This document shows positions 4,039-41,508 of a stretch of DNA of 64,000 bases, piece by piece (within the stretch, counting starts at the first letter, position 1; every line of letters begins with the position of its first letter). The notes beneath the pieces were generated by a model, which made no database searches, was not told the DNA's origin, and saw only the letters and a list, made by a program, of their open reading frames with translations. Location of the stretch: the NCBI GenBank assembly GCA_020536535.1, contig JAHLWZ010000625.1, positions 1 through 64,000 on the forward strand, read 5' to 3'. This DNA is from Pelomyxa schiedti (taxonomy: Eukaryota; Protista; Evosea). The position numbers were made by a program, and so were the translations under genes.

Positions 4039-4327
4039 GCTTTGACGGTAAAGTTTTTAGTTTTGTTTTGTTTTGTTTGTTGTGATCGAATGTGATGAAA
4101 AAACGGTTAAGAAGCGCAGGCGTCTGGGGGGTTTCAGAGAAATAGAATTGTTGGCCCCATCCCAGTAAATATGTGGTGCTCTAGAAGAGTTGGAATAGAG
4201 CTCATCTCTAAGAAGAACTGAACTGAGCCAGGTACTTCGCCATTCCGCCAGCCCATCAAGCCCAATTTGGGGAACCCAACGTTCTTTTTCGCCACAAAAA
4301 TAAATAAAAAAAAGGTTATCGGTGTTC

Positions 4328-6396
4328 ATGAAGTGGGGTTTTGTATCACCTCGTGGCCTGGGCTACACCCAGTCCCGAGCAGATTGTATTATTATTATTC
4401 TTGCCACACTGCTCCTCTCAGTCTCACAAGCACATCTCCCATCATCAGCGACAGCCTCTGGGCGCGCTCCCGCCGCCGCGGGCACCTCGTGCACGTACGT
4501 AGGCTACGGCGGGTTCTTCGACAGCAACCAGCGGACGTTCCAGACCGCACTTGTGGGACAGGACATCCTGGTCGAGGTCCACGCCTACTCCCTCGGGTTC
4601 CTGCACTTCACCGAGCACGCGGACGGCGCCTCCCTGTGCGACTTCTCGCTCTCGAACCCCAACGGCTGGACCGTCGCCCAGCTCAAGACGTCCACGGACC
4701 CCTGCGCCCAGAACGTCACCAAGACCTTCGACGCGGCCGAGTACGAGGCCCACTGCGGGTCCCTGTCGACGACCGAGACCGGCGAGTCGCTGCGCACGAC
4801 AGCGGAGGACGTATCTGTAAACCTGTGGTACAACAAATTGCCGAATGGCGACGACTATTACGTGAACGCCAGCGCTGTGTTTCAGACTGTACGCAAAATT
4901 TCAAACGTCAATTCCAATGAGAACTAAATAATCATATTCTCACACCAGTATAAGACAAACATATAAATATTTATATATATAGATTGGTTCTCTCGTTTTC
5001 ATTTGTGATCTGTTTTTTTTTAATTCCCATTAACTATGTGGAATTCACTGTGTTTGGGTTGGGGGCGGTTTGAACAGACCCTGTTGCTTCAGACAAGCGT
5101 AAATTCTTCGCTGATCGCATATACTGTCACGCCACTTGCCTGTGGTGCTGTAGTTTATGGCACCTCGGGTGTCTATGGGGAAAACATTTTTGCAAATATC
5201 ATGGCTCAAGTCACAGCCCCATACTTCATTACTGCGATTGAGTCTATACCTATAGCTATTCCTTCAACCCAGTATGCTGCAACTGTTCTGACAACCGGCA
5301 TTGATCACGTGGAACATGGGTACTCCTCAGCATTTGGTCTGCTAACTTCCATTCCCAGACAAGGTAACCTACTTTAGGATTTGGTTATCCTTAACACATA
5401 CTAGATTGCTATTGCTATGGCAACTTCACTGTGAAGTTCTATCTGAGCTGCTCTCCTTATGACGCGTCTTGTGATACAGCTGTCCTTGCGGCCAACCCAT
5501 TCTTCCTTACTAATATTCTTGTGGCAGTACCAAGCTGTGCTATGCAGTACCAATCCTCGTCAGCTGCTTTGACCATAATAACATACAACGAGGATGATGA
5601 AGTGGACCTTTCATTTATGTCTGGCGACAGTGTGTTCTCAATCATAAAACTCCCAGCCTAATAAATATTCTCCAGGAATCAAAGTTAGCGAACAGATTTC
5701 TGTAGAAAACGGCCTTACACCTGCAGGCAACTGCGAATGCTCTACCACCTTAATGGTCTACGACTGGGCTGGCATTCTTCAGAGTAACTTTTCTGATGTG
5801 CAGAATGATAGAAGATTCTCTCCCGTAACTGTATCTGTTGAACCTCTTCTGAATGAATTTTGGTTTGTACCCTTTTTCCCCTCACACAGCCAGGATTGCT
5901 CACCAGACTCATTTGCAGGATAACCCTTGATTCAGACCTTTTTAACTCTCCCAACGGGAATGTAATATCTCTGTTTGGCAAATGTGTTATCAACTGGGAC
6001 GACGAAGAGGAGGCCGAAGCTCACGGCACCCAGAACCTCCGCGCCGACTCGGAAATCCCAGCTTCAACCCAAGGCTACATGTCTCTGTCAGTTGCTCCCA
6101 CAGGGGATGTTGACCTCTCGTGGGTCATTGCCCTGTGTGCTTGTGGTGGTGCTGCGGCCGTAGTCGCATTCGCTGTACTGGCTTTTGTAATTTACAAGAG
6201 ACGGCACAAGGTCCCGCAGGTCATAGTGGATGTACCATCTCAAAAACCCCACCACGAAGAGAGTGTAAGCACGATTTGTAGTTCAACCACCCCACCTCCA
6301 GCACCAACCACCACCGTGACTATTGCCAAAGCCAATTTCGCTCTCCCGCGAGTACCCACCAACGGTACACATGTCAACTATGGTACCAATTCGTAA
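4328..6396 (+). CDS. Predicted type I membrane protein (signal peptide, Cys-containing ectodomain, single TM), function unknown
   Basis: N-terminal hydrophobic stretch IIIILATLLLSVSQA, GC-rich coding exon, TM WVIALCACGGAAAVVAFAVLAFVIY followed by KRRHK, GT-AG introns between the ORF pieces. Confidence 0.7.
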
Positions 6397-8470: not shown

Positions 8471-11185
8471 TTACAGAGAATTGTTTAGGTTGATGGCTTC
8501 TAAGGACTCTATGGTCTTGGCCCATTTCGCTTCCATCTGTTTTAGTTTGATGAGAGGGATAAAAGAAACTGAAGAACACACTATTCGGTGGTAATCCCTT
8601 TGCTGCAGGGCATAGGAATGTAGTGCACTTATTCCATCACTGAGCCGGTCGTGGTGCATGCGGTTGAGCTCGGCCATGAAAATTCCGTTATGAGCTTCAG
8701 AGGATTCCTTTGTTGACTCCAGCTTCTTTTCAACTTCATACCTGGGAGCGTTTTTTTTGATTGTATAACTGAGGAAAAATCACTTACACAGCTCTGGCTC
8801 GCTCTACACTAGCATCTGAACTATTGTCCGCTTTCAGTTTTCTATGTGTCTCTTCTAGTTTTTGGTAGGATGCTTCAGCTGCATCACGTACTTTGACAGT
8901 TTCCTGAGATAAAAATCAATTCTGGTTTCGGGGGGAAAAAAAAGAGTACCAAGAAAGAGAGTAAGACGGCAGCTGAATCTTTTGTATAGTCGCAAAAAAA
9001 AGTAGAGTTTTCTGGCTGTTTTGGCATTTCAATAAGAATTCAAGTACAATACGATAATAGACAAACTGCAGATTTATAAGCCATTGACTCAGAGTGATAG
9101 ATGGAATTCATTGTAACGAGAACTTCATTGAAGGCACTACATTGGGGACAGTCTTTTCGCCAACAGGGTTCCACTTGAAGTTGTTCAAGACGTTCCACAA
9201 ACCTATCCAACTCACTGGCAAGGGCTTGAAAGATTAGAACATTCAAGTGCTATTGTGGCAAACACACCAGCCCGTTTTGTTTGAATGGCAAAGTCAGCTT
9301 CATTTATTGCCATAAGGGCCCTCTCGAACTTGGATGAGAATTTCCTAAATGACTCTAACTATTGGAGTCAAAAATGTAAGCCAAAAACGAAGTTGCAGCT
9401 GACCTCCAAACCACATTGCTCCATGTGTTCATGAGTTGTATTGGCAATATCAACTTGAAGTGGGAATTTTTCTCCAATTTCTCTGCACTCCTTTTCCATT
9501 TTTCTCTTCCAGGGTTTCCACTGTATTGCAGGAGTAAGAATAAAACAGGGTAAAACTAAAATATTTCATTTTTCCATACTTGGGGTGTATCTGTCAAAAA
9601 CCCTTGAAAAATCACACTAAAACGAATAGCTGGATGTTTGGCACATAAATTAATGTATCTTTCAAGATGTTTTCTGCGGGATTCAATAAAATTATTATCA
9701 AATCGACCTGTTTGATTTTCATGCAGTTAGAAGTCTCTCCTCTGGAGCAGTCATAAATAAGAAACACTAAAAGAGGGAAAGTCACCGGAAATTTGTTTGT
9801 CTGGGAGACCGGGAAGAACAAGAATTGGAAAATGTTCTTGAAGTCTGGCATGCAGCCACAAGAAGTGTTTAAACCTGGAATTGTCATCTTGAATAGACCA
9901 AACGCAGTTGTAAACCTTCTTTCAACGGTTTTACCGTTGGGTAGTGTAATAATATAAAATGTGGCTTTCTTTAATCCAGAGAACTTTGCTTTTGTTTCTC
10001 CCACAGTCAAAGAAACTGATAGTGGTTCTAGGGAATCACTCCACTCATGAGAATTCTTTTTGTTTTGTGATCAGTATTGATAGAAACGCATTCAGAGTCA
10101 CATTAATACAATACAGTGGTTCTGTCGATCTTACAGTCCACCTTCTTTCGTCTGATGGTGGTGGGGTTGTTGAAGAGAGTGGGGGTGATGTGGAATGTAC
10201 TGGGGGCTTAGGACTTGATGGAGGTGCGGCCTTTGAATTAGGGGTATTTTTGCCAGTAGTATTTCTTGGCGGCGGCGGTTCAGGTGGAGTCTGTTTGCTA
10301 GATTTACTGAGATCTGCATTCGTGCTACTAGTAGTTGCAGTGCTCCCCAATGTAGTGGTTGAATCTGTGTTACTTGGACTTTTTGAACGGGAAATGTTGG
10401 CAGGTTGTGCCGCAGACAAGGCAGTTACCTTGGTTGGAGCTGGTTTTGGTGGGGCTGGTTGTGGGCGGGGCTTTGTACTGCTACTTGTGGTTGTAGTAGC
10501 ACAATGCAAGGGTGGAGTTTTTGGAGATTTGGTGGTTGTTGTTTTAGATACTGTCTGTGACTGTGCAGGTGTTGTGGCAACTTCTCGGGGAGGAAGTGCT
10601 GGGGCAATTGGGGTCACTTCTCGTGGAGGGAGTGTTGGTGCCTGCACTGGTGCTGGCTCCACAACCAATGGTGGCACATCAGGCAGTATTTCAATGAATT
10701 CTATTGGGACAAACCCAACTTTCCCATTTAACTCAGCTTCCACCCATTCAGGTGATTCTGGTAGTCGAACAAATGTGATCATATCCCCAACCTAATAATT
10801 ATAGGCAGAATAGAATATCACACTTCCAAATAGTGGTGAATTGAAAGCAAACCTTTACAGGTAAATCCTCATCAATGTCAGAGTTGTAATCAAATTTCAC
10901 GCGTGCCTTGCGCGGCAACTTGTCTTCTTCCTGTTGAATTAATTTCACGAAATTGGAGGGGAAATATCCCACTCTGCCATTCAGCTCCCCTGTAGATATT
11001 AAGTTGGACTCACGGAAAGGAAGGCCACTTATGGGACGCACGAAAACAACAAAGGCAACAAACAAACCTTCCCACCAGTCCGCAGAGCCAGTATCAGTGT
11101 TTGTTATTTTGATGGTGTCGCCGGGTGCAAATGGCAGCTCAGTCTCAGCCTCGGGCACATTTCCTGTCACTGCCTGGGCGTACAT
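8471..11185 (-). CDS. Sorting nexin 9/18/33-like protein (SH3-SH3-Pro-rich-PX-BAR)
   Basis: Two SH3 domains (ELPFAPGD...WWEGELNGRVGYFPSNFV; WVEAELNGKVGFVPIEFI), a PX domain (VERRFKHFLWLHARL...LPGLPDKQISGRFDNNFIESRR), the SNX9-type WKPWKRKMEKE linker and a helical BAR-like end (AELNRMHHDR...QQRDYH). Confidence 0.85.
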
Positions 11186-33892: not shown

Positions 33893-36590
33893 TTAGGAGG
33901 CCAGCTCTGTGAATTCTTTGGTGAATTTGTGGGGGCAGTGGAGCCAGACTCCAGAGCTGTCATCTCCAGAAGCTAGTATTAATGTACCTGGCCAGTCCTC
34001 ACTCGTAACAGTGACAGAGGTTACAGCATCCTGGTGGCACGAAAGAGAAAATAACAGAGGGTCTCCCTTTCGTAGGTCCCAAATTCTGACCTTGTGTGTG
34101 CACTTAGAGTTGCAAACCACCAATTTTAGTAACTTATTTGCGTACTTTGGTGTCCTCACCACCAGTTACTAGCATGCCGGTACTTGTCCAAAAAGGGTAA
34201 TTAGCTGGACCTTGTGGCAGGGTCTTTTTCCCGTGATCCCGTTGAGTCTTGGAAAATTGCTGTTCAATATCAGCTGGATCCACTTGGAAAAATCACTTTG
34301 GGGGGAAAATTGTACATATACATACAGTGGTGCACAAGTACGGAGAGGGGTTTTGATGGGAAGCGAATGTCGAACACTGGAATTGTATTGTAGGTTTCGC
34401 CTGCTATGGCAAGGAAGGTATCGCAATGGCTAATATGACACACATTCAGCATACTCTGAGTACAGAAAGATTCCTGGGGTACCTGATAGAGATACCATTC
34501 ATCTCTGAATGAGCTGTACGAAGAGATGCCACAGACTCATGAGAGCGAAAGTCATAAACAAGTGCCTGGTGGTCCGCACCTCCAAGGACAAATAGAGGAG
34601 AATATCGAAAACTGCAGACACAGGTGGTAGAACGTTGATCGGGCACATATTGTGCATTTTCGGGTCTGCTGTATGGGAAGTACAGTGCACTTGGTGTTTG
34701 AATCTTAAAAAAACCAGAGTTGGTTCTTGAAATTTACTATGAGGATTTACACAGTCTTTATGAGCAACAATAAGATTCTCTGAGTAGAGTCCATAACCAA
34801 AGGCCATTTCAAAAATCCTTTCCCAGAATTAGTAGTGTAGAGTTTCGTGGCTAGCGCAACTCTTCATGTATATCCTTTTCAGCTTGCGGTTCAGTGCCAT
34901 TATAAATATCCCAAACTGCAACACTACAATAAAATGAGTTCAGCACATGTATTCTTCCTCCCACAAACCGGTCATCGTTTCCCGCAGAAATAAGTAAGTT
35001 TGCTTCTGTGTGGTGGGTCAGGATGCGTGATACGGAGGTTTTGTGCTTCCAAATCCTGTGGTTTGGGGTATCAGGGTCAAACCCTAAAACAGATGGGTGA
35101 CTCCACACATCGGTGATAGGCCACACCTGTGGAGTTCCATTTCAAGGGGAAATAAGGCAATGAGAATTACTTTTATTAAACCATCACTCCCTGCAGTTGC
35201 AACCAGTGAATTATCACAAGTCACACTGACCTCATTTACGGTCTTGCCCCCATGACTTAGGCTCCGATATGTTCCTGTCCACAAGTTGTTCAAAAAAGTA
35301 CTATATAAAGTCCAAGGTACCATCTTTGAAGTCAAATATAAATGCTTCAGTTGGTTGATCAATACCCTCATAAATTGTACCACACCCAACAAGATACAGC
35401 CTAGAAGAATTAAAAAGCAGTACAAGGTGGTTTTTCATACTTGTCAGACGGTTTATTGTACAAAAACTTCAATTCAACAATGGATCCACAGTGAATTTGG
35501 GACAAGCTCATTCTTGGAGTGATTTTTTGGTAAACTTGGCAGTATATGTCATGCTGAAACTGAGGTGTCGGAATTTTCTATTCGAAAAGTAAACTGGAAG
35601 CCAGCAGTACATTGATGAAACGACAATCAATGGGGAAAGAATGTATTTACCCCATACTGTGCAGCGAATAGTGTTTGAGGAGTGGAACTTTGGATAGTTA
35701 TATTATCACAGAGAGAGTGCCTTTTGCATCTATTTGTATGTACCTACTAACCGTTAGTGCCGATAAGAAATGAAAGTGTTACTTGATTATGGAGTTGGAT
35801 GACACTCTTCAACATGAATATCATTTCTTTTGCTTTATCCTGCAGCTCACGATTTAGATAGCAAGCTGCAGAAGGAATTGTCACCTCGTCAAAACAGACG
35901 TTTTCAGCTACTTGATGAACCTTGTGACTCCAGGATGGCTTTGTATGTTTCTCGAATCTCGACTTGAGATATGACGGCGGGGAAGTATCTGGGGTCACTT
36001 TCTTATTCCTAGCAACTGCAACTGGAACTGGAACTGGGGGTTTCCGATGCCGTAGGAGTATGTACGCTGAACTGATGAATTGTCAATTGACCTTTTGTAG
36101 GCACGGGTATCTCGTGTAGTCTTGTCCTTGGTGGATTTGGAGTTACTGGAGCCTGATTTAGACATAACAGCGGAATTTGCACAGGAATCAGTGTTGTGGT
36201 GTACAGCAGAATGCAATGTTTTGGGTCTGTAATTTGGTTGCACTTGTGGTTGAGGGGCCGCAGGGCTTATCAGTGGGTCTTTCTTCGCTATAAGAGCCAG
36301 TACCACCTCACACCTGCCGAGAAAACACATGAGCGAGCAGAAAATTGTGGGAGGCCCCACCAGTGCATCGTAGTGGCAACTTCCACATGTTCTGGTGTAA
36401 AATCAGCAATTGGATACAGAGCATTTTCGTAGTGTTTTGCGTTGTCCCTGTCGGTCATCTATGCCCTGGATTAGCAATACAATTTGGTTTTTTCGTCTGA
36501 AAAACCTAAAGAATTGGCGCTCCGTTGTCTGTGGTGCATCGTGTCTCACCGTTGACACAATTTCCCTGCGTCTACGAAAAATGTCATCAA
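33893..36590 (-). CDS. WD40-repeat protein, multi-exon (start uncertain)
   Basis: LVATAGSDGLIK|VW, LLISAGNDDR|SVAVWD, GGADHQALVYDFR, VRIWDLR...HQDAVTSV...LASGDDSSGVWL. Confidence 0.75.
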
Positions 36591-36846
36591 TGAAGGGGGT
36601 AGGACAAGAATTTGGTAAGATCCGTTAACGATTTCTTGTTGACGTTTGTGGTTGGCGGTTCGGGGGTGGCGGTGGTAGGTAGTACTCGCGGATCTCGGAT
36701 CTCACCTCACATCTGACACGTCACGTGACCGTGCTGTTGGAGTTGCGGGGATGTTCTTCCCTTCGGGTGTCCTTTCACTATCAGGCGTGATATGTTATCA
36801 TCGTGTGTTTCTTCCAACCTTTTTCTTTCTTTTTCTTTATTTTATA

Positions 36847-37461
36847 TTAGGCATGTGCCCACAGCGCAGTTGTTTCCGTCGATGACATATCAGTGTACAA
36901 CTCACTCGCTGTAGTATGTATTGATTCTTGTGGTCTTACTGGAGGCTCTCCAATGTAGATTTCCTTACTTTCAGAACCGTTGTACCCGCACAGGTAATAG
37001 TGGCAGTTGCGGCTATGTTTAAACACCATTTCAAAATATGTAGAATGAGCCCCACGCTTGGCATTTTCTTTTTTTTCTTTTCCCCCAGGGTCTGCTGGAA
37101 CTCCCAACCCAAGCAGCTCTCCTGCTAAGTAATTACCGATTCTATCGTTCTTCAAACTAATTGATACCGTAATAGAAGAGGGGGCTGGCCACTTGCCCAA
37201 GGCTTTCGGGTGAGCTGTTGGACCCACTTTCATTTGATTGAGCAGGTTCTAACGTCACCACTTACCCATAAACTAAGTAGCAGCTGAGAAGTTCCGCGGC
37301 AGTCCAAATTGGACCCAAATCCAATGGCGGACTTGTACACAAAGGTTAAAGGGAGAGGGAAACGAAACAAAACAAAACAAAAGTAGCTTCCCCTGAACAA
37401 ATCGATAGACCTGGGTGGGAATCCCAAGCAGTTCAGTGGAAAAAGTACAATATATTAACAT
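36847..37461 (-). CDS. Small spliced hypothetical protein or gene remnant
   Basis: Short exons can be joined in frame by GT-AG introns (LSCYLVYG|GSNSSPESLGQVASPLFYY|AGELLGLG). No recognisable family. Confidence 0.3.
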
Positions 37462-37570
37462 GTTGGGGAAAAAACAGCAGCTAGAACAAGCTGATGATTC
37501 TTTCTTTTTAATCTTTTTCATTTTTTTTTAAAAAAAAGGCACCCACCACGTTTGTTTGTGGTGAGCGCCA

Positions 37571-38354
37571 GCGAGAGACACTTGAGTGAGTGTGCTCGCC
37601 GTCGTAAGTTGTTTGGCACTTCGGTGAGTGCCTGTTGTGGTTTGTTGGTTGGTTAGAGCTGCCTACTTGGGTAGGTAGGTTTGTGCTCGTAGTTTTTAGT
37701 TGTAGTTGACACTGCAGTGAGTGTCGTTGGTTTTGTTTGCACAGAGCGACATGCAGTTGTGGGAAGAGAGCAAGAAGCCGAATGAAGAGGGCGTCTGTAG
37801 AAAGAGAGCACCGGTTACAGCCGAGAGCGAGTCAGTCGGTGCCGACAAGACCTCTCGATGGCAAGCAAAAAAACACATAACAATAGGGTTGAAAAAAAAA
37901 ACAAGGTTGTGTTTTGTTTTTTTTTTCTTGTTGGTTGGGGGGGGGCCTACTTGGGTAGGTAGGTTTGCCCCTCTTGTTTTTGACGCTTTGGTGAGCGCCG
38001 GTTTTTTGGTTTGGTAGGTTTTGCTCGTTTTCGACACCTCGGTGGGTGTGCTCGTAGTAGTAGTAAGTTGTTGGTCGAGCCGCCCACTTGGGTAGGTAGG
38101 TCTGTGCTCGCCAGTTGTTTGACGCTTTGGTGAGCGCCGGTTTGATTTGAGCCACCTACTGGGGTAGGCAGGCGGCTGCTCGTGGTTTTTCGAGCCGCTT
38201 ACGGGGGTAGGTAGGCGGCTGCTCTTGTTTTTGGTTCGAGCCGCCCACTTGGGTAGGTAGGTTGCTCCAACCAAAACGAGCCGCCTACTGGGGTAGGTAG
38301 GCGGCTGCTCGTGGTTTTTCGAGCCGCCTACGGGGGTAGGTAGGCGGCTGCTCG
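37571..38354. repeat. Array of palindromic hairpin repeats of two types (8 type A, 6 type B)
   Basis: Type A: CGAGCCGCCTAC-NNGGGTAG-GTAGGCGGCTGCTCG. Type B: GRCRCY-NNNGTG-RGYGYC. All in the same orientation, mostly with T-rich linkers. Confidence 0.92.
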
Positions 38355-39267
38355 GGGTTTGTTCAAACAAAACACGACAACAACAAAAAAAAAACCACGG
38401 GGAGGGGAAAAAGCCCAACACGAAATACCTTGCTTCAATACACACCCGACGCGGACGAACGACACATGTGTCTCCCACCAAACACCAACTCCAACGCCCC
38501 CCCGTCCCACACACGCCGCACCGGCTCTTGTTGCATATTGGTCGAGATCTTGATCTTGTCGGTTGTTGTGAGTGTTTGGTTTTTTTATAATATTATGACT
38601 TTTGATTTTTCTTGTGGCTTTTATACAGAAATATCAATTTGACACGTCGATATTTGCGTACAACTGCGATAGAACAAGTCGGAGTAGGGAATAGAAACTC
38701 TTTCTTAAAAAAATTTCCAGATCTGAATGAAAGGAGACGAAAGCCTTGGGCAGACACCGATGGTTCTCTGTTGTTTGGGAGCTCGAAAAAAAGGGTTCTT
38801 TGTGTTGTCCAAGGCAAGGCCTTCGGAATGGATACACTACAAGGGATGGGCGCAATCACATTGCAACCCCTTTCCGATTTATATTGGGATGTGGGATTTT
38901 GTGCCATCCTCGTTGCCCTCCAAAAACATCGACTCTTGAAAGAACATAAATTGAGTCCCTGTCATCGATGGGGAAAAAACAAGAACAACACACGACAAGT
39001 AGTCCTTACTTTGAAAATATGGCACTTGGCAGCCTTTCTCGAGGCGGCACATTTGTTCACACATGCACTCCCAAGTGACTTAACGATCTTAAAGACAACC
39101 AACAGCCGGCGCGAAACACCGGCACCAACAGATTCTGTTCGAGATCTTCAGAACATGTCAACGCGTCCAGCGCGGCCCACCGTAGGGCACGTCTTTTGCC
39201 TTTTATTAAATCAAGTACTCTTCGCAATTCCCGTAACTGAACCGGGAAAAGAAAAGGGCAGAGAGAG

Positions 39268-40289
39268 ATGCGATCGTCAGAGCCGGAGGCGCAGGAGACC
39301 TACATGGACAAGGAGTACTTGGTGTTGGTTGACGAAAATGATAGATCTACGGGTGGATCAGCTTCGAAGCGGGAATATATCCAACCTCTGAATCACTTCC
39401 GTCTATCACTGTTTTCCTTAACCCCAACGCACGCCACTTAGTGAAAACGAGCGGGGAAGTTGGCATATTGCACCGTGCTTTCAGCGTGTTCCTTTTTGAT
39501 TCTCGTATTTGTCATCCCGATCGTTTTTTGCAGGCTTTCTAAACTGTGTGCCAGAGAACCGACTGCTGGTGCAAAAGAGATCATCTGACAAAATTACTTT
39601 TCCGCATCTGTGGGCAAACACTTGTTGTTCTCATCCTCTCACCAATGCTCCAAATGAGACTGAGCCAATTTTGGGTTTGTTCGGCCACCTCAACCCCAAT
39701 TGCGCAAGTAGCAGGTGCCAATTTCACCAAAGGAGTCAAGCGAGCAGCCCAAAGAAAACTTGGCCATGAACTCGGAATCGCGGCCTCGCAGCTTCCTCTT
39801 GACATGTTCCAGGTGGCAACTAAAGTGCACTACTGGGCCAAGTGGAATGAAACATGGGGTGAGAACGAAGGTATGAAGAGTATAACTTACAATGGCTTAA
39901 CTGTTTCCTTTTTATTGGTCAAACAGTGGACACTATCCTCATTTGCCAAGGTAACCAGTTTCGCTCAACATTTCCGCTTATGTATCCATCTTATAGGGAA
40001 TGTGGATATGACGCTGAACCCCAGCGAAGTCTCCGATGTGCAATATGTTACCAGAGAGCAACTTTCCTCTCTTCGCGAATGCACCTGTGTGCCTTTTTCC
40101 TTAATACAAGTGGATTTCCTAACCAAATGAACAGGTTCAGGTTCTTCCTGTACTTGCCAAGGCCAGACCATTTCCTGCTTCTGTCAACTAACACCATGGT
40201 TCGCCCGTATCATTAAAGCCAACCTCCTCTTCAAATGGTGGGACTCACTACACTCCATCACATGTGACAACGAAATCCACAGATTGTAA
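39268..40289 (+). CDS. IDI1: Isopentenyl-diphosphate delta-isomerase (type 1, Nudix fold)
   Basis: LVDENDR...SKRE|CHL...[52 protein letters not shown]|VD, LNPSEV, LTPWF...KWWDSL. Confidence 0.97.
39377..39432 (+). other. U12-type (minor spliceosome) AT-AC intron
   Basis: 5' ATATCC, branch site TTTTCCTTAAC (39412-39422), 3' CAC. Removal gives the conserved K-R-E-C-H-L. Confidence 0.9.
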
Positions 40290-40354
40290 ACAAAACAGCT
40301 TGTACCCAAACTTTTTTTTTACAGAGGTTCTTGTTTTACAAACAAGTGGTACCC

Positions 40355-41174
40355 TCATACCAAAGCAAACACCATTTGGACGTTGACTTCAACACTGAGT
40401 GAGCCTGGAGCAATTGGAGGAGTTGTGATGGAATATGCCGAGCTGTAGTCATACTGCACCTTGGTTGTTGTAGTTGGAGGCTCACTTACAGCCAGGAGAT
40501 TGCCCAGTGTTTTTTTGCTAAGGGTTGCGAGGTTGGCTGCTTTCACTTGAGCATCGGCTACGGCAAGGGCCCTTGCTGCTATCAGAGCCTAGGAAAGAGT
40601 GTAAATTTGGATACCCAAGAAGTAGCAGTGTACCGGTGAGTAGTCTCTCGACTGGAACTGGACTCCTTGAATGCGATTGGCACCGGCAAGTAGCGCAGCT
40701 TGTAGAACTTGTGGAAGCAGGGGAATGGGAGAGGTGACGGTCAGCATGTTAGTCATTTGCCACTATAGAATGTAGGTTTCAGATTACAGAGGGTGGTATT
40801 CCGTACCTCGCTTATAACACCTTCCGAGTTTGTCATGGGATATAAGTTGATGAATGTAGTTTTGAGATCCGAGTTCGGGATGCCTGCATTAAGCACCGCT
40901 TGAATAACAGCCTATAATAATAGAAAAAAGTGGTTATATCGCCAAAAAGCCAAAAAGGGGGAAAAAAAAAGTAAGGATTGCACACCTGAGAAGTCTTCGA
41001 GTTTGTATCCACAACGTCGAAAACACTGGTCCCATTAGTGAAGACACCGATCTCAAAAACGGCAACGTCAACAGTACTGTTGGATATCCCAGTACCAATC
41101 ACCGTGAGTTGGCACCTAGCGAGTGACACAACCAAAGATACAGTAGCCAGAAACACAAGTAACGATGACGACAT
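40355..41174 (-). CDS. SIMPL/DUF541 (BP26-like) secreted protein
   Basis: Signal peptide, LTVIGTG...DVAVFEIGV, AGIPNSDLKT, AGANRIQGVQF, ARALAVADAQVKAANLA...LGNLLAVSE, PIAPGSLSVEVNVQMVF. Confidence 0.88.
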
Positions 41175-41508
41175 GGATTCCCTTCAGGTGTGTGCTGTTG
41201 TTGTTGTAGGTTGCGTGTTGTCTTGGACTCGTCTATTTACTGTGCGCCGAAGACGGTATAAAAGGACCGTGGCACCACGCACGCCATGGGAGCCAAAAAA
41301 TGAAATTATGGGATTCGTCATGGAGTGTGACTTGGCGTCGGGGACTGCACAGTGTTCGGTGTCGTCTTTGAGGTGATCCACTGAGCAACGAAAAAGTCGG
41401 TTCCCAAAAATGGGTGCTGTGTTGGTTGGAATTGAGCAAGTGATTTCTTTTTCCTGAAAGGTACTCCGAATAAAAGAAAACTTAAAAGAAAAAAAGCACA
41501 AACAAACG

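Follow-up and report, generated by a model that had tools for sequence, protein, structure and literature searches.

A hairpin array with a shared 5' splice-site-like motif at three paralogous loci of Pelomyxa schiedti, a candidate docking RNA for U1-type snRNPs

Background

What might an array of small hairpins, all in one orientation and built from two kinds of unit, be doing in the genome of an anaerobic amoeba? The question is posed by the region between positions 37538 and 38353 of a 64,000-nucleotide stretch of contig JAHLWZ010000625.1 of Pelomyxa schiedti (C625; the whole stretch is referred to here as the window). A first-pass annotation made from the letters alone had seen there an array of hairpins with conserved loops and covarying stems, and had put forward a multivalent protein-binding or sponge non-coding RNA (ncRNA), an untranslated region (UTR) element or a site acting as DNA. 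We find that the two unit types share a motif, G/GURRGY (the slash marks the splice point), which reads as a consensus and very strong 5' splice site and which the annotation had missed. On this basis we propose, tentatively and with less than even confidence, that the array may be a multivalent docking or decoy RNA for U1-type small nuclear ribonucleoproteins (snRNPs), access to which would be gated by the hairpins. P. schiedti has 7.4 introns per gene (PMC8887013), and the genome searched here is its assembly of 52,367,397 bases in 5337 contigs.

Results

Both hairpin types carry the same motif

Direct reading of the sequence bears out the eight type-A and six type-B hairpins of the first-pass annotation and their single orientation. 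All eight type-A loops (starting at 37667, 37951, 38088, 38160, 38203, 38249, 38289 and 38332) match NNGGGTAG, and all six type-B loops (37583, 37621, 37714, 37988, 38039 and 38127) match NNNGTG. The two families were recovered by a repeat search of the window, and CYWCNNGGGTAGGYAGG, with at most one mismatch allowed, matches eight times, always on the plus strand, where shuffled sequences lead one to expect 0.03 matches. What the A and B units have in common is the motif and not any particular stem: G/GTRRGY is kept as GTAGGT or GTAGGC in type A and as GTGAGT, GTGGGT or GTGAGC in type B and in a further hairpin, H0, described below. Across the three genomic loci that carry the array, 37 of 37 units have RGTRRGY where the loop meets the 3' arm, so placed that the loop holds positions -2 to +3 and the 3' arm positions +4 to +8. 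The invariant columns of the B alignment are the loop GTG (+1, +2 and +3), the G at +5 and the C that pairs with it, and the A alignment reads GGGTAGGTAGG with 8 invariant columns, compared with 2 in the complementary 5' arm.

In order to count potential contacts with U1 we took as a U1-pairing site any stretch of at least 8 contiguous pairs to the canonical U1 arm with GT at +1/+2. The 871-nt array holds 18 such sites on the plus strand and 1 on the minus strand, against 1.2 +/- 1.1 in shuffles, which corresponds to a plus-strand density of 20.7 per kb compared with 0.5 per kb in the rest of the window. Its paralogues on contigs C1363 and C373 show the same bias (16 plus and 1 minus in the former, 10 and 0 in the latter), and the array shows the pairing by which a U1-binding element is defined, namely 7-8 or more contiguous pairs with the 5' arm of U1, the GU at +1/+2 among them. 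The plus-strand folding ensemble leaves motif positions -2 to +2 for the most part unpaired (0.53-0.67) and has positions +5 to +8 mostly in pairs (0.06-0.18).

Stem pairing and fold

The covariation that had been claimed for both stem types holds for type B and lacks statistical support for type A. Both sides change in five of the six B-stem pairs, so that the compensating changes quoted for these stems are real, and the B-stem covariation score of 0.598 compares with 0.293 in shuffles (0 of 500 reach it) and with at most 0.246 in slid controls. For the inner A stem no significant covariation was found (0.160 compared with 0.137, a score that 95 of 500 shuffles reach). The A stem is supported by palindromy, with 85% of cells paired as against 27-49% when the arms are slid; its pair 8-27 is seen as G-C, G-U and A-U, the change from CCTAC/GTAGG to CCTGC/GCAGG occurs with both intermediates present, and the exchange of the outer stem for GGGG/CCCC in the unit with its loop at 37951 is as the annotation had described it. 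As compensating changes in short palindromes can also come about by DNA template switching, they are no proof of selection on RNA structure. The three paralogous array sequences vary too little for RNAalifold to speak for or against covariation between the copies.

Both strands fold far better than shuffles, the plus strand at -360 kcal/mol (z -7.8) and the minus strand at -300 kcal/mol (z -11.9). Wobble pairs are neutral on the question of strand, as had been noted before (about 14 G-T and about 13 A-C cells), and the summed unit energies slightly favour the plus strand (A units -288 compared with -268 and B units -128 compared with -116). Structure picks no strand.

U1 and U1-like RNAs of the genome

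At least 18 U1 genes score over the Rfam cut-off, often as head-to-head pairs (loci L007-L010 and L108-L127), and their 5' arms are of three kinds, ACUUACC, ACAUACC and ACGUACC; one copy reads AAACUUACCUAG and two read ..ACCUAA. Variant U1 arms are already known in Archamoebae (bioRxiv 10.1101/2022.06.08.495308). The genome also holds a gene for an Sm-class-like RNA of about 215 nt, in four copies at 90-100% identity (L131-L134: C987:2888-3113 on the minus strand, C734:6128-6353 on the minus strand, C4:74530-74753 on the plus strand and C609:5199-5422 on the minus strand), which combines a terminal stem-loop and two AUUUUUG sites with a free 5' arm and which we call U1-like. It gives no match in Rfam, even at E<=10. 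Upstream of its genes there is a conserved CCCGTAAT element that resembles the CCCATAAT found upstream of U1 genes, and an element of this CCCATAAT-like kind lies about 55 nt upstream of U1 and U1-like genes alike.

The body of the U1-like RNA is conserved and its 5' arm varies between copies with 90-98% identity in other respects (ACCUACCU, CCCUACCU, ACCCACCU and UCUACCU). Two of the U1-like arms, ACCUACC and ACCCACC, are exact complements of GGUAGGU, as found in the A units, and of GGUGGGU, as found in the B units with GTGGGT. The duplexes predicted between these arms and the motif reach -15.5 and -16.3 kcal/mol, whereas seven real donors of the window, each with its best arm, lie between -1.7 and -9.7 kcal/mol.

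The array is confined to three paralogous loci

In a whole-genome search the 861-nt array matches three places only, C625 itself, C1363:2674-3511 and C373:15953-16536. The A core (at most one mismatch) occurs 8, 8 and 3 times at C625, C1363 and C373 respectively, with one decayed unit in addition at C373, and elsewhere as scattered single chance matches; the B pattern outside the three loci is at control level, and triple clusters of GGTRRGT single out the same three loci. The copy number thus obtained by scanning the genome is three paralogous loci. Homology with C1363 takes the form of a block of about 2 kb, from 36795 to about 38900, that contains indels and a single small inversion, and includes a unique tail at 38396-38900 (plus strand, about 80% by sequence comparison) and, around 37176, the first ~95 nt of exon 3 of an upstream transcript at 92% identity. 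Homology with C373 covers 37422-38257, and the C373 array, at ~73% identity overall, is called the oldest copy. Units have been gained and lost between the array copies, and the three-copy alignment shows that one B-like hairpin was lost from the window copy through an 8-nt deletion.

The array is a small paralogous gene-like family and not a dispersed repeat. A dispersed repeat or transposon was rejected after the A and B patterns, the array, both flanks and the GGTRRGT clusters had been searched genome-wide and had led to these three loci only, and no transposase, Rep/helicase or reverse-transcriptase domain was seen in the open reading frames (ORFs) neighbouring the three copies. An exact-pattern scan of metagenome contigs for relatives gave 97 single chance matches and no arrays. 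C373 and C1363 share a further downstream segment, at about 81% identity, that is missing from the window (positions 8537-8750 of locus L006 and 4115-4424 of locus L005); in C373 a TGGG microhomology marks the junction of this segment with a truncated A-unit loop, an arrangement suggestive of a deletion of some 900 nt.

Transcription of the array and its neighbourhood

The RNA evidence consists of assembled contigs from four single-cell libraries of one study, mapped on 35600-41200 (5601 letters); these Logan contigs carry no strand, transcript ends or level. The array stretch 37906-38413 is covered by contigs in all four libraries, so that the region, whose silence would have counted against the first-pass annotation, is transcribed. 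Depth over this stretch is 13-25, compared with 0 at 35600-36720 and at 38592-39339, and these silent flanks argue against DNA carry-over. Five A units and two or three B units are spanned by contigs that run colinear with the genome; neither strand nor minor spliced forms are visible in these contigs. One contig begins exactly at 37906, the next base after a conserved AG, for which the chance probability is roughly 0.06-0.1. No RNA contig covers 37486-37905, a gap which may stem from k-mers shared with C1363 or from masked low-complexity tracts and hence proves nothing.

A second group of contigs covers 36851 to ~37480 and reveals spliced exons on the plus strand. Exon 1, the first that is supported by RNA (36851-36993, from an RNA contig), has no ORF in any frame. 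The 85 letters that the contig holds between 36993 and 37176 correspond to 37044-37128, and this arithmetic gives an 85-nt exon 2 at 37044-37128 and points to a 50-nt GT..AG intron at 36994-37043. The next intron, of 47 nt and also GT..AG (37129-37175), has its joint in two runs and is identical to C1363 at 46 of 47 bases; that it differs by a single base while the upstream exons are rearranged (small inversion 36898-36972) is statistically unremarkable at ~8% divergence. Exon 3, or an RNA-covered stretch ending before a T/A tract, extends over 37176-37485 as judged from contigs and depth bins. Joined by script, these spliced upstream exons contain no ORF on the plus strand.

At all three loci the array lies downstream of plus-strand transcription. 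In C373 a plus-strand phospholipase B-like gene has its stop codon about 150 nt before the array, and the last exons of this gene (L006 7192-7760, C373:15191-15759) match Pfam Phospholip_B at positions 391-462 of 487. Beyond the array a candidate 61-nt intron, GTGAGT...TACAG, can be read at 38568-38628 on the plus strand; it is without RNA support, and C1363 retains its GT and AG. At 39377-39432, in the gene that follows the array in the window, lies a typical U12-type intron, which starts with ATATCC, ends in AC and has a TTCCTTAAC branch site.

Layout of the array

The array starts earlier than the annotation had it, with the hairpin H0 (37538-37569, plus strand; 12-bp arms, an 8-nt loop and G/GTGAGC in the 3' arm, by sequence and folding), which stands right after a T9A8 tract at 37521-37537 where, in the three-copy alignment, the good conservation of the three-locus block begins. 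H0 has two A-C mismatches on the plus strand, which are G-U on the minus strand, and its C373 copy is perfect. Also overlooked was a decayed A-like remnant at 38006-38028 (plus strand; repeat search and site count), in which GGTAGGT is kept, with a U1-pairing site at 38014, and the 5' arm is gone. Between the two halves of the array lies a purine-rich, non-repetitive core (37757-37905, plus strand; about 150 nt), kept in three of three genomic copies and the best conserved block of their alignment. A small nuclear RNA (snRNA)-type promoter within the core was rejected, there being no CCCATAAT-like element before 37906.

On the plus strand the first half runs on from H0 through B unit 1 (37577-37594), a GTAAGT linker that is kept at three of three loci (37604-37609), B unit 2 (37615-37632), A unit 1 (37656-37688) and B unit 3 (37708-37725), the three B units all having GTGAGT. 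An A10/T10 inverted repeat with 14-nt arms that are 100% complementary, detected by the repeat search, occupies 37891-37927. The second half comprises A unit 2 with its outer stem GGGG/CCCC (37940-37972), B unit 4 (GTGAGC, 37982-37999), B unit 5 (GTGGGT, 38033-38050), a second GTAAGT linker, seen in the sequence (38063-38068), A unit 3 (38077-38109), B unit 6 (GTGAGC, 38121-38138) and then A units 4 (38149-38181), 5 (38192-38224), 6 (38238-38267, with a short 11-nt 3' arm), 7 (38278-38310) and 8 (38321-38353). The B units were delimited by unit alignment and covariation and the A units by pattern matches, combined with alignment for units 1 to 3, with hairpin energies for units 1 and 4 to 8, and for units 4 to 8 with Tandem Repeats Finder, which reports a 43-nt period over 38149-38360. 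The third loop G of A unit 5, at 38205, is A in the RNA contigs of three of four libraries and G in the assembly; this may be an allele, the assembly having pooled seven cells. A1-type units, e.g. at 38203-38218, contain GGGGGTAGGTAGGCGG with four G runs, which could form a two-tetrad G-quadruplex in competition with the plus-strand hairpin.

Stems measure 5-7 bp in type B and 8-11 bp in type A, and on the plus strand each unit consists of a short GC-rich hairpin and, after it, a U-rich linker. Hairpins with a T run behind them are found at 15 sites, as against 1.8 +/- 1.2 in shuffles. Such a layout is that of intrinsic (Rho-independent) terminators, which differ in that their mechanism belongs to bacterial RNA polymerase; here RNA contigs run through five array units.

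Known RNA classes and coding potential

No family in Rfam 15 matches at its gathering threshold anywhere in the window, and at E<=10 the best match on 36700-38900 reaches 23.9 bits, compared with a cut-off of 58.8. An array of tRNA- or short interspersed element-like units was rejected as ARAGORN finds no tRNA or transfer-messenger RNA in the window, and a microRNA cluster was ruled out by stem length, since this would need stems of about 22 bp or more. Protein coding was likewise rejected: the 43-nt period is not a multiple of 3, a minus-strand ORF of 272 amino acids is an effect of base composition with no Pfam match over threshold and lies in three pieces in C1363, and an ATG-started ORF over the core has a frame that is not shared between copies (indels of 5 and 1 nt).

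Discussion

On the explanation that we favour, C625, C1363 and C373 would form a small family of loci that are transcribed by RNA polymerase II and apparently non-coding. The array would be their repeat body, carried by a non-coding RNA or, at C373, by a 3' UTR. Such an RNA would dock many U1-type snRNPs without productive splicing, with the exposed loop as a toehold and the stem gating or tuning access. The outcome may be retention in the nucleus or on chromatin, control over 3'-end formation of the carrier transcript, or titration of those U1 snRNPs by which a purine at +4 is read. In a narrower version, which we regard as rather unlikely, a dedicated ncRNA would act as the multivalent sponge or docking site of a single U1-type snRNP class, be it canonical U1 and/or the four-copy U1-like RNA with arms matching A and B, and would set how much of the purine-at-+4 class is free amid several parallel U1 specificities. 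What is new here is the motif common to both unit types and its predicted link to U1-type arms; structured ncRNAs built from repeats and elements made of U1 sites are known already.

A number of observations weigh against a U1-docking function. The splice-site interpretation was made after the motif had been seen, and if A and B share ancestry then the match is one coincidence and not two. The ten RNA-supported donors of the window are weak and mostly without G at +5 (e.g. GTAATA, GTATTT and GTTTGT), so that the term splice-site-like rests on complementarity to snRNAs and not on the donor usage of the genome. One C373 unit (locus L006 8291-8327) retains a perfect hairpin and has lost the GT, the C625 and C1363 arrays (~90% identical where they align) resemble each other no more closely than their flanks do, and three loci of one species form the whole comparative basis. 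The strand of the array RNA is unproven and no contig links the spliced upstream exons to the array; wobble counts are neutral, with H0 and the GACGCT/AGCGCC units pairing better on the minus strand. snRNP binding itself remains a prediction.

The strongest competitor is a structured ncRNA or 3' UTR that serves as a platform for some other RNA-binding protein, for example an hnRNP A1-like binder of UAGG, attracted by the G-rich loops GGUAGG and GGUG, the likeness to splice sites being incidental. We consider this doubtful, though it has to be taken seriously: the region is transcribed, the B stems covary, the loop motif is invariant, UAGG occurs twice in each A unit, and GC-rich hairpins with U-rich linkers resemble known multivalent long non-coding RNA (lncRNA) repeats. 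Against it, we know of no single protein motif that spans both A (GGUAGGUAGG) and B (GGUGAGUG), which GURRGY does. The array might instead be a palindromic minisatellite that evolves neutrally in non-coding or UTR sequence and is transcribed passively, its arms being kept by template switching and unit turnover. The near equality of G-T and A-C mismatches, the A stems without significant covariation, the gain and loss of units including the B-like hairpin destroyed by the 8-nt deletion, and an array identity no higher than that of the flanks are all in its favour. This we nonetheless think unlikely, as five different B stems still pair at four positions with the loop GTG and the C-G pair invariant, the motif persists in every unit even of the divergent C373 copy, and the array has been retained at three loci with different flanks. 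The argument of the first-pass annotation that this is no plain minisatellite is upheld by the covarying B stems, the universal loop motif and the transcription of the region.

Were the minus strand the functional one, its C-rich loops (CUACCC.. and CACCGA) would resemble a U1 or U1-like 5' arm and could pair with 5' splice sites or G-rich targets. The larger fold z-score of that strand, the fact that H0, A unit 4 and the GACGCT units become perfect only via minus-strand G-U pairs, the U8 that follows H0 on that strand and the strandless contigs would all fit, and yet every RNA-supported or conserved splice signal in and around the three loci lies on the plus strand, 9 distinct units have the A-stem pair 8-27 as a plus-strand G-U that would read C-A on the other strand, the plus strand is slightly ahead in summed hairpin energies, and the C373 array follows a plus-strand gene; we judge a minus-strand function quite improbable. 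Very improbable, in our estimate, is that the motifs are real alternative or recursive donors, using a common acceptor such as the AG at 37904-37905 or 38627-38628, or allowing A units of 43 nt to be removed recursively at TAG/GTAGG. The X1 contig that starts at 37906 after the conserved AG, with none on 37486-37905, and the closeness of the 43-nt A period to the local intron size of 44-74 nt, together with the recursive-site form of TAG/GTAGG, speak for such use; they are set against the colinear contigs across five A units in all four libraries, with no joint listed within the array (two X4 joints at repeats were left out of the listing), and the chance, given above, of a contig starting after an AG.

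The DNA-level candidates of the annotation fare worst. A mosaic like the repetitive extragenic palindromes and bacterial interspersed mosaic elements (REP/BIME) does, as here, combine two types of imperfect palindrome in mosaic order with GTAG, and the enrichment of hairpins followed by a T run would suit a mobile element or DNA-structure feature. REP/BIME are prokaryotic, linked to REP-associated tyrosine transposases (RAYT) and present in tens to hundreds of dispersed copies, whereas this array lies on a eukaryotic nuclear contig with spliceosomal introns and at three loci in gene-like paralogous blocks; no RAYT (Y1/HUH) transposase was seen in the ORFs beside the three loci, no genome-wide Y1 search having been made. 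Helitron or HUH subterminal hairpins are opposed by homology that extends as a 2-kb gene-like block on both sides instead of stopping at element ends and by neighbouring ORFs devoid of Rep, helicase or transposase domains (termini were searched non-exhaustively), and the same setting of three paralogous loci with no adjoining transposase-like ORF speaks against an origin or centromere. An explanation of this kind is extremely improbable. Of the earlier interpretation, the candidate that survives is a multivalent protein-binding or sponge ncRNA, or a UTR element; REP/BIME, HUH ends, origin and centromere fall away together with A-stem covariation.

Several known systems share parts of the proposed arrangement. 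The A-repeat of Xist, NORAD and PNCTR are tandem-repeat lncRNA platforms that act by multivalent binding. Platforms of the Xist A-repeat type, like the array, have about 8 short GC-rich hairpin cores with U-rich spacers, and they sit, as the array may, in spliced ncRNA; they have no sequence relation to it and a different motif and likely partner, so that the likeness is one of working mode and not of family membership. Decoy donors are represented by the pseudo-5' splice sites of the P element. In the negative regulator of splicing of Rous sarcoma virus, a purine-rich region lies beside a decoy 5' splice site (PMC3082916). Both bind U1-type snRNPs without productive splicing, and the adjoining of a purine-rich region to putative decoy sites recurs in the array; the known examples come from a virus and a transposon and have one or two decoys each, whereas the array is cellular and in three copies, and any such role for its purine core would be a guess.

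A functional parallel may be found in 5' splice-site motifs or U1 sites that hold RNAs in the nucleus or on chromatin (PMC4380460, PMC9074902, bioRxiv 10.1101/310433). In these, as apparently in the array, an unused consensus 5' splice site complementary to the U1 5' arm lies in an ncRNA or terminal exon. They are single or scattered and mammalian, whereas the array, in an amoeba that has several variants of the U1 arm, offers 10-18 strong sites per locus, half buried in hairpins, for which binding and retention are predicted. Attenuation of a donor by RNA secondary structure is known from the 5' splice site of murine leukemia virus (PMC2794156), where the motif is partly in a stem and structure tunes U1 access as proposed here; donors of that type are single and functional, those of the array many and apparently unused.

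The literature searched describes no such arrays from Pelomyxa or any other Archamoebae, and Rfam contains none. Even without the link to U1, the array stands as a clear candidate structured repeat lncRNA from a protist lineage for which that literature describes none. If the U1-docking interpretation is true, the genome of this amoeba would encode a natural array of decoy splice sites gated by hairpins, a cellular RNA that engages many U1-type snRNPs at once, in a host with about 7 introns per gene, weak donors and several U1 variants with different arms. The balance between several U1 specificities in one cell would then become directly testable, and U1-dependent RNA retention or decoy regulation would extend from animals and viruses to the Amoebozoa.

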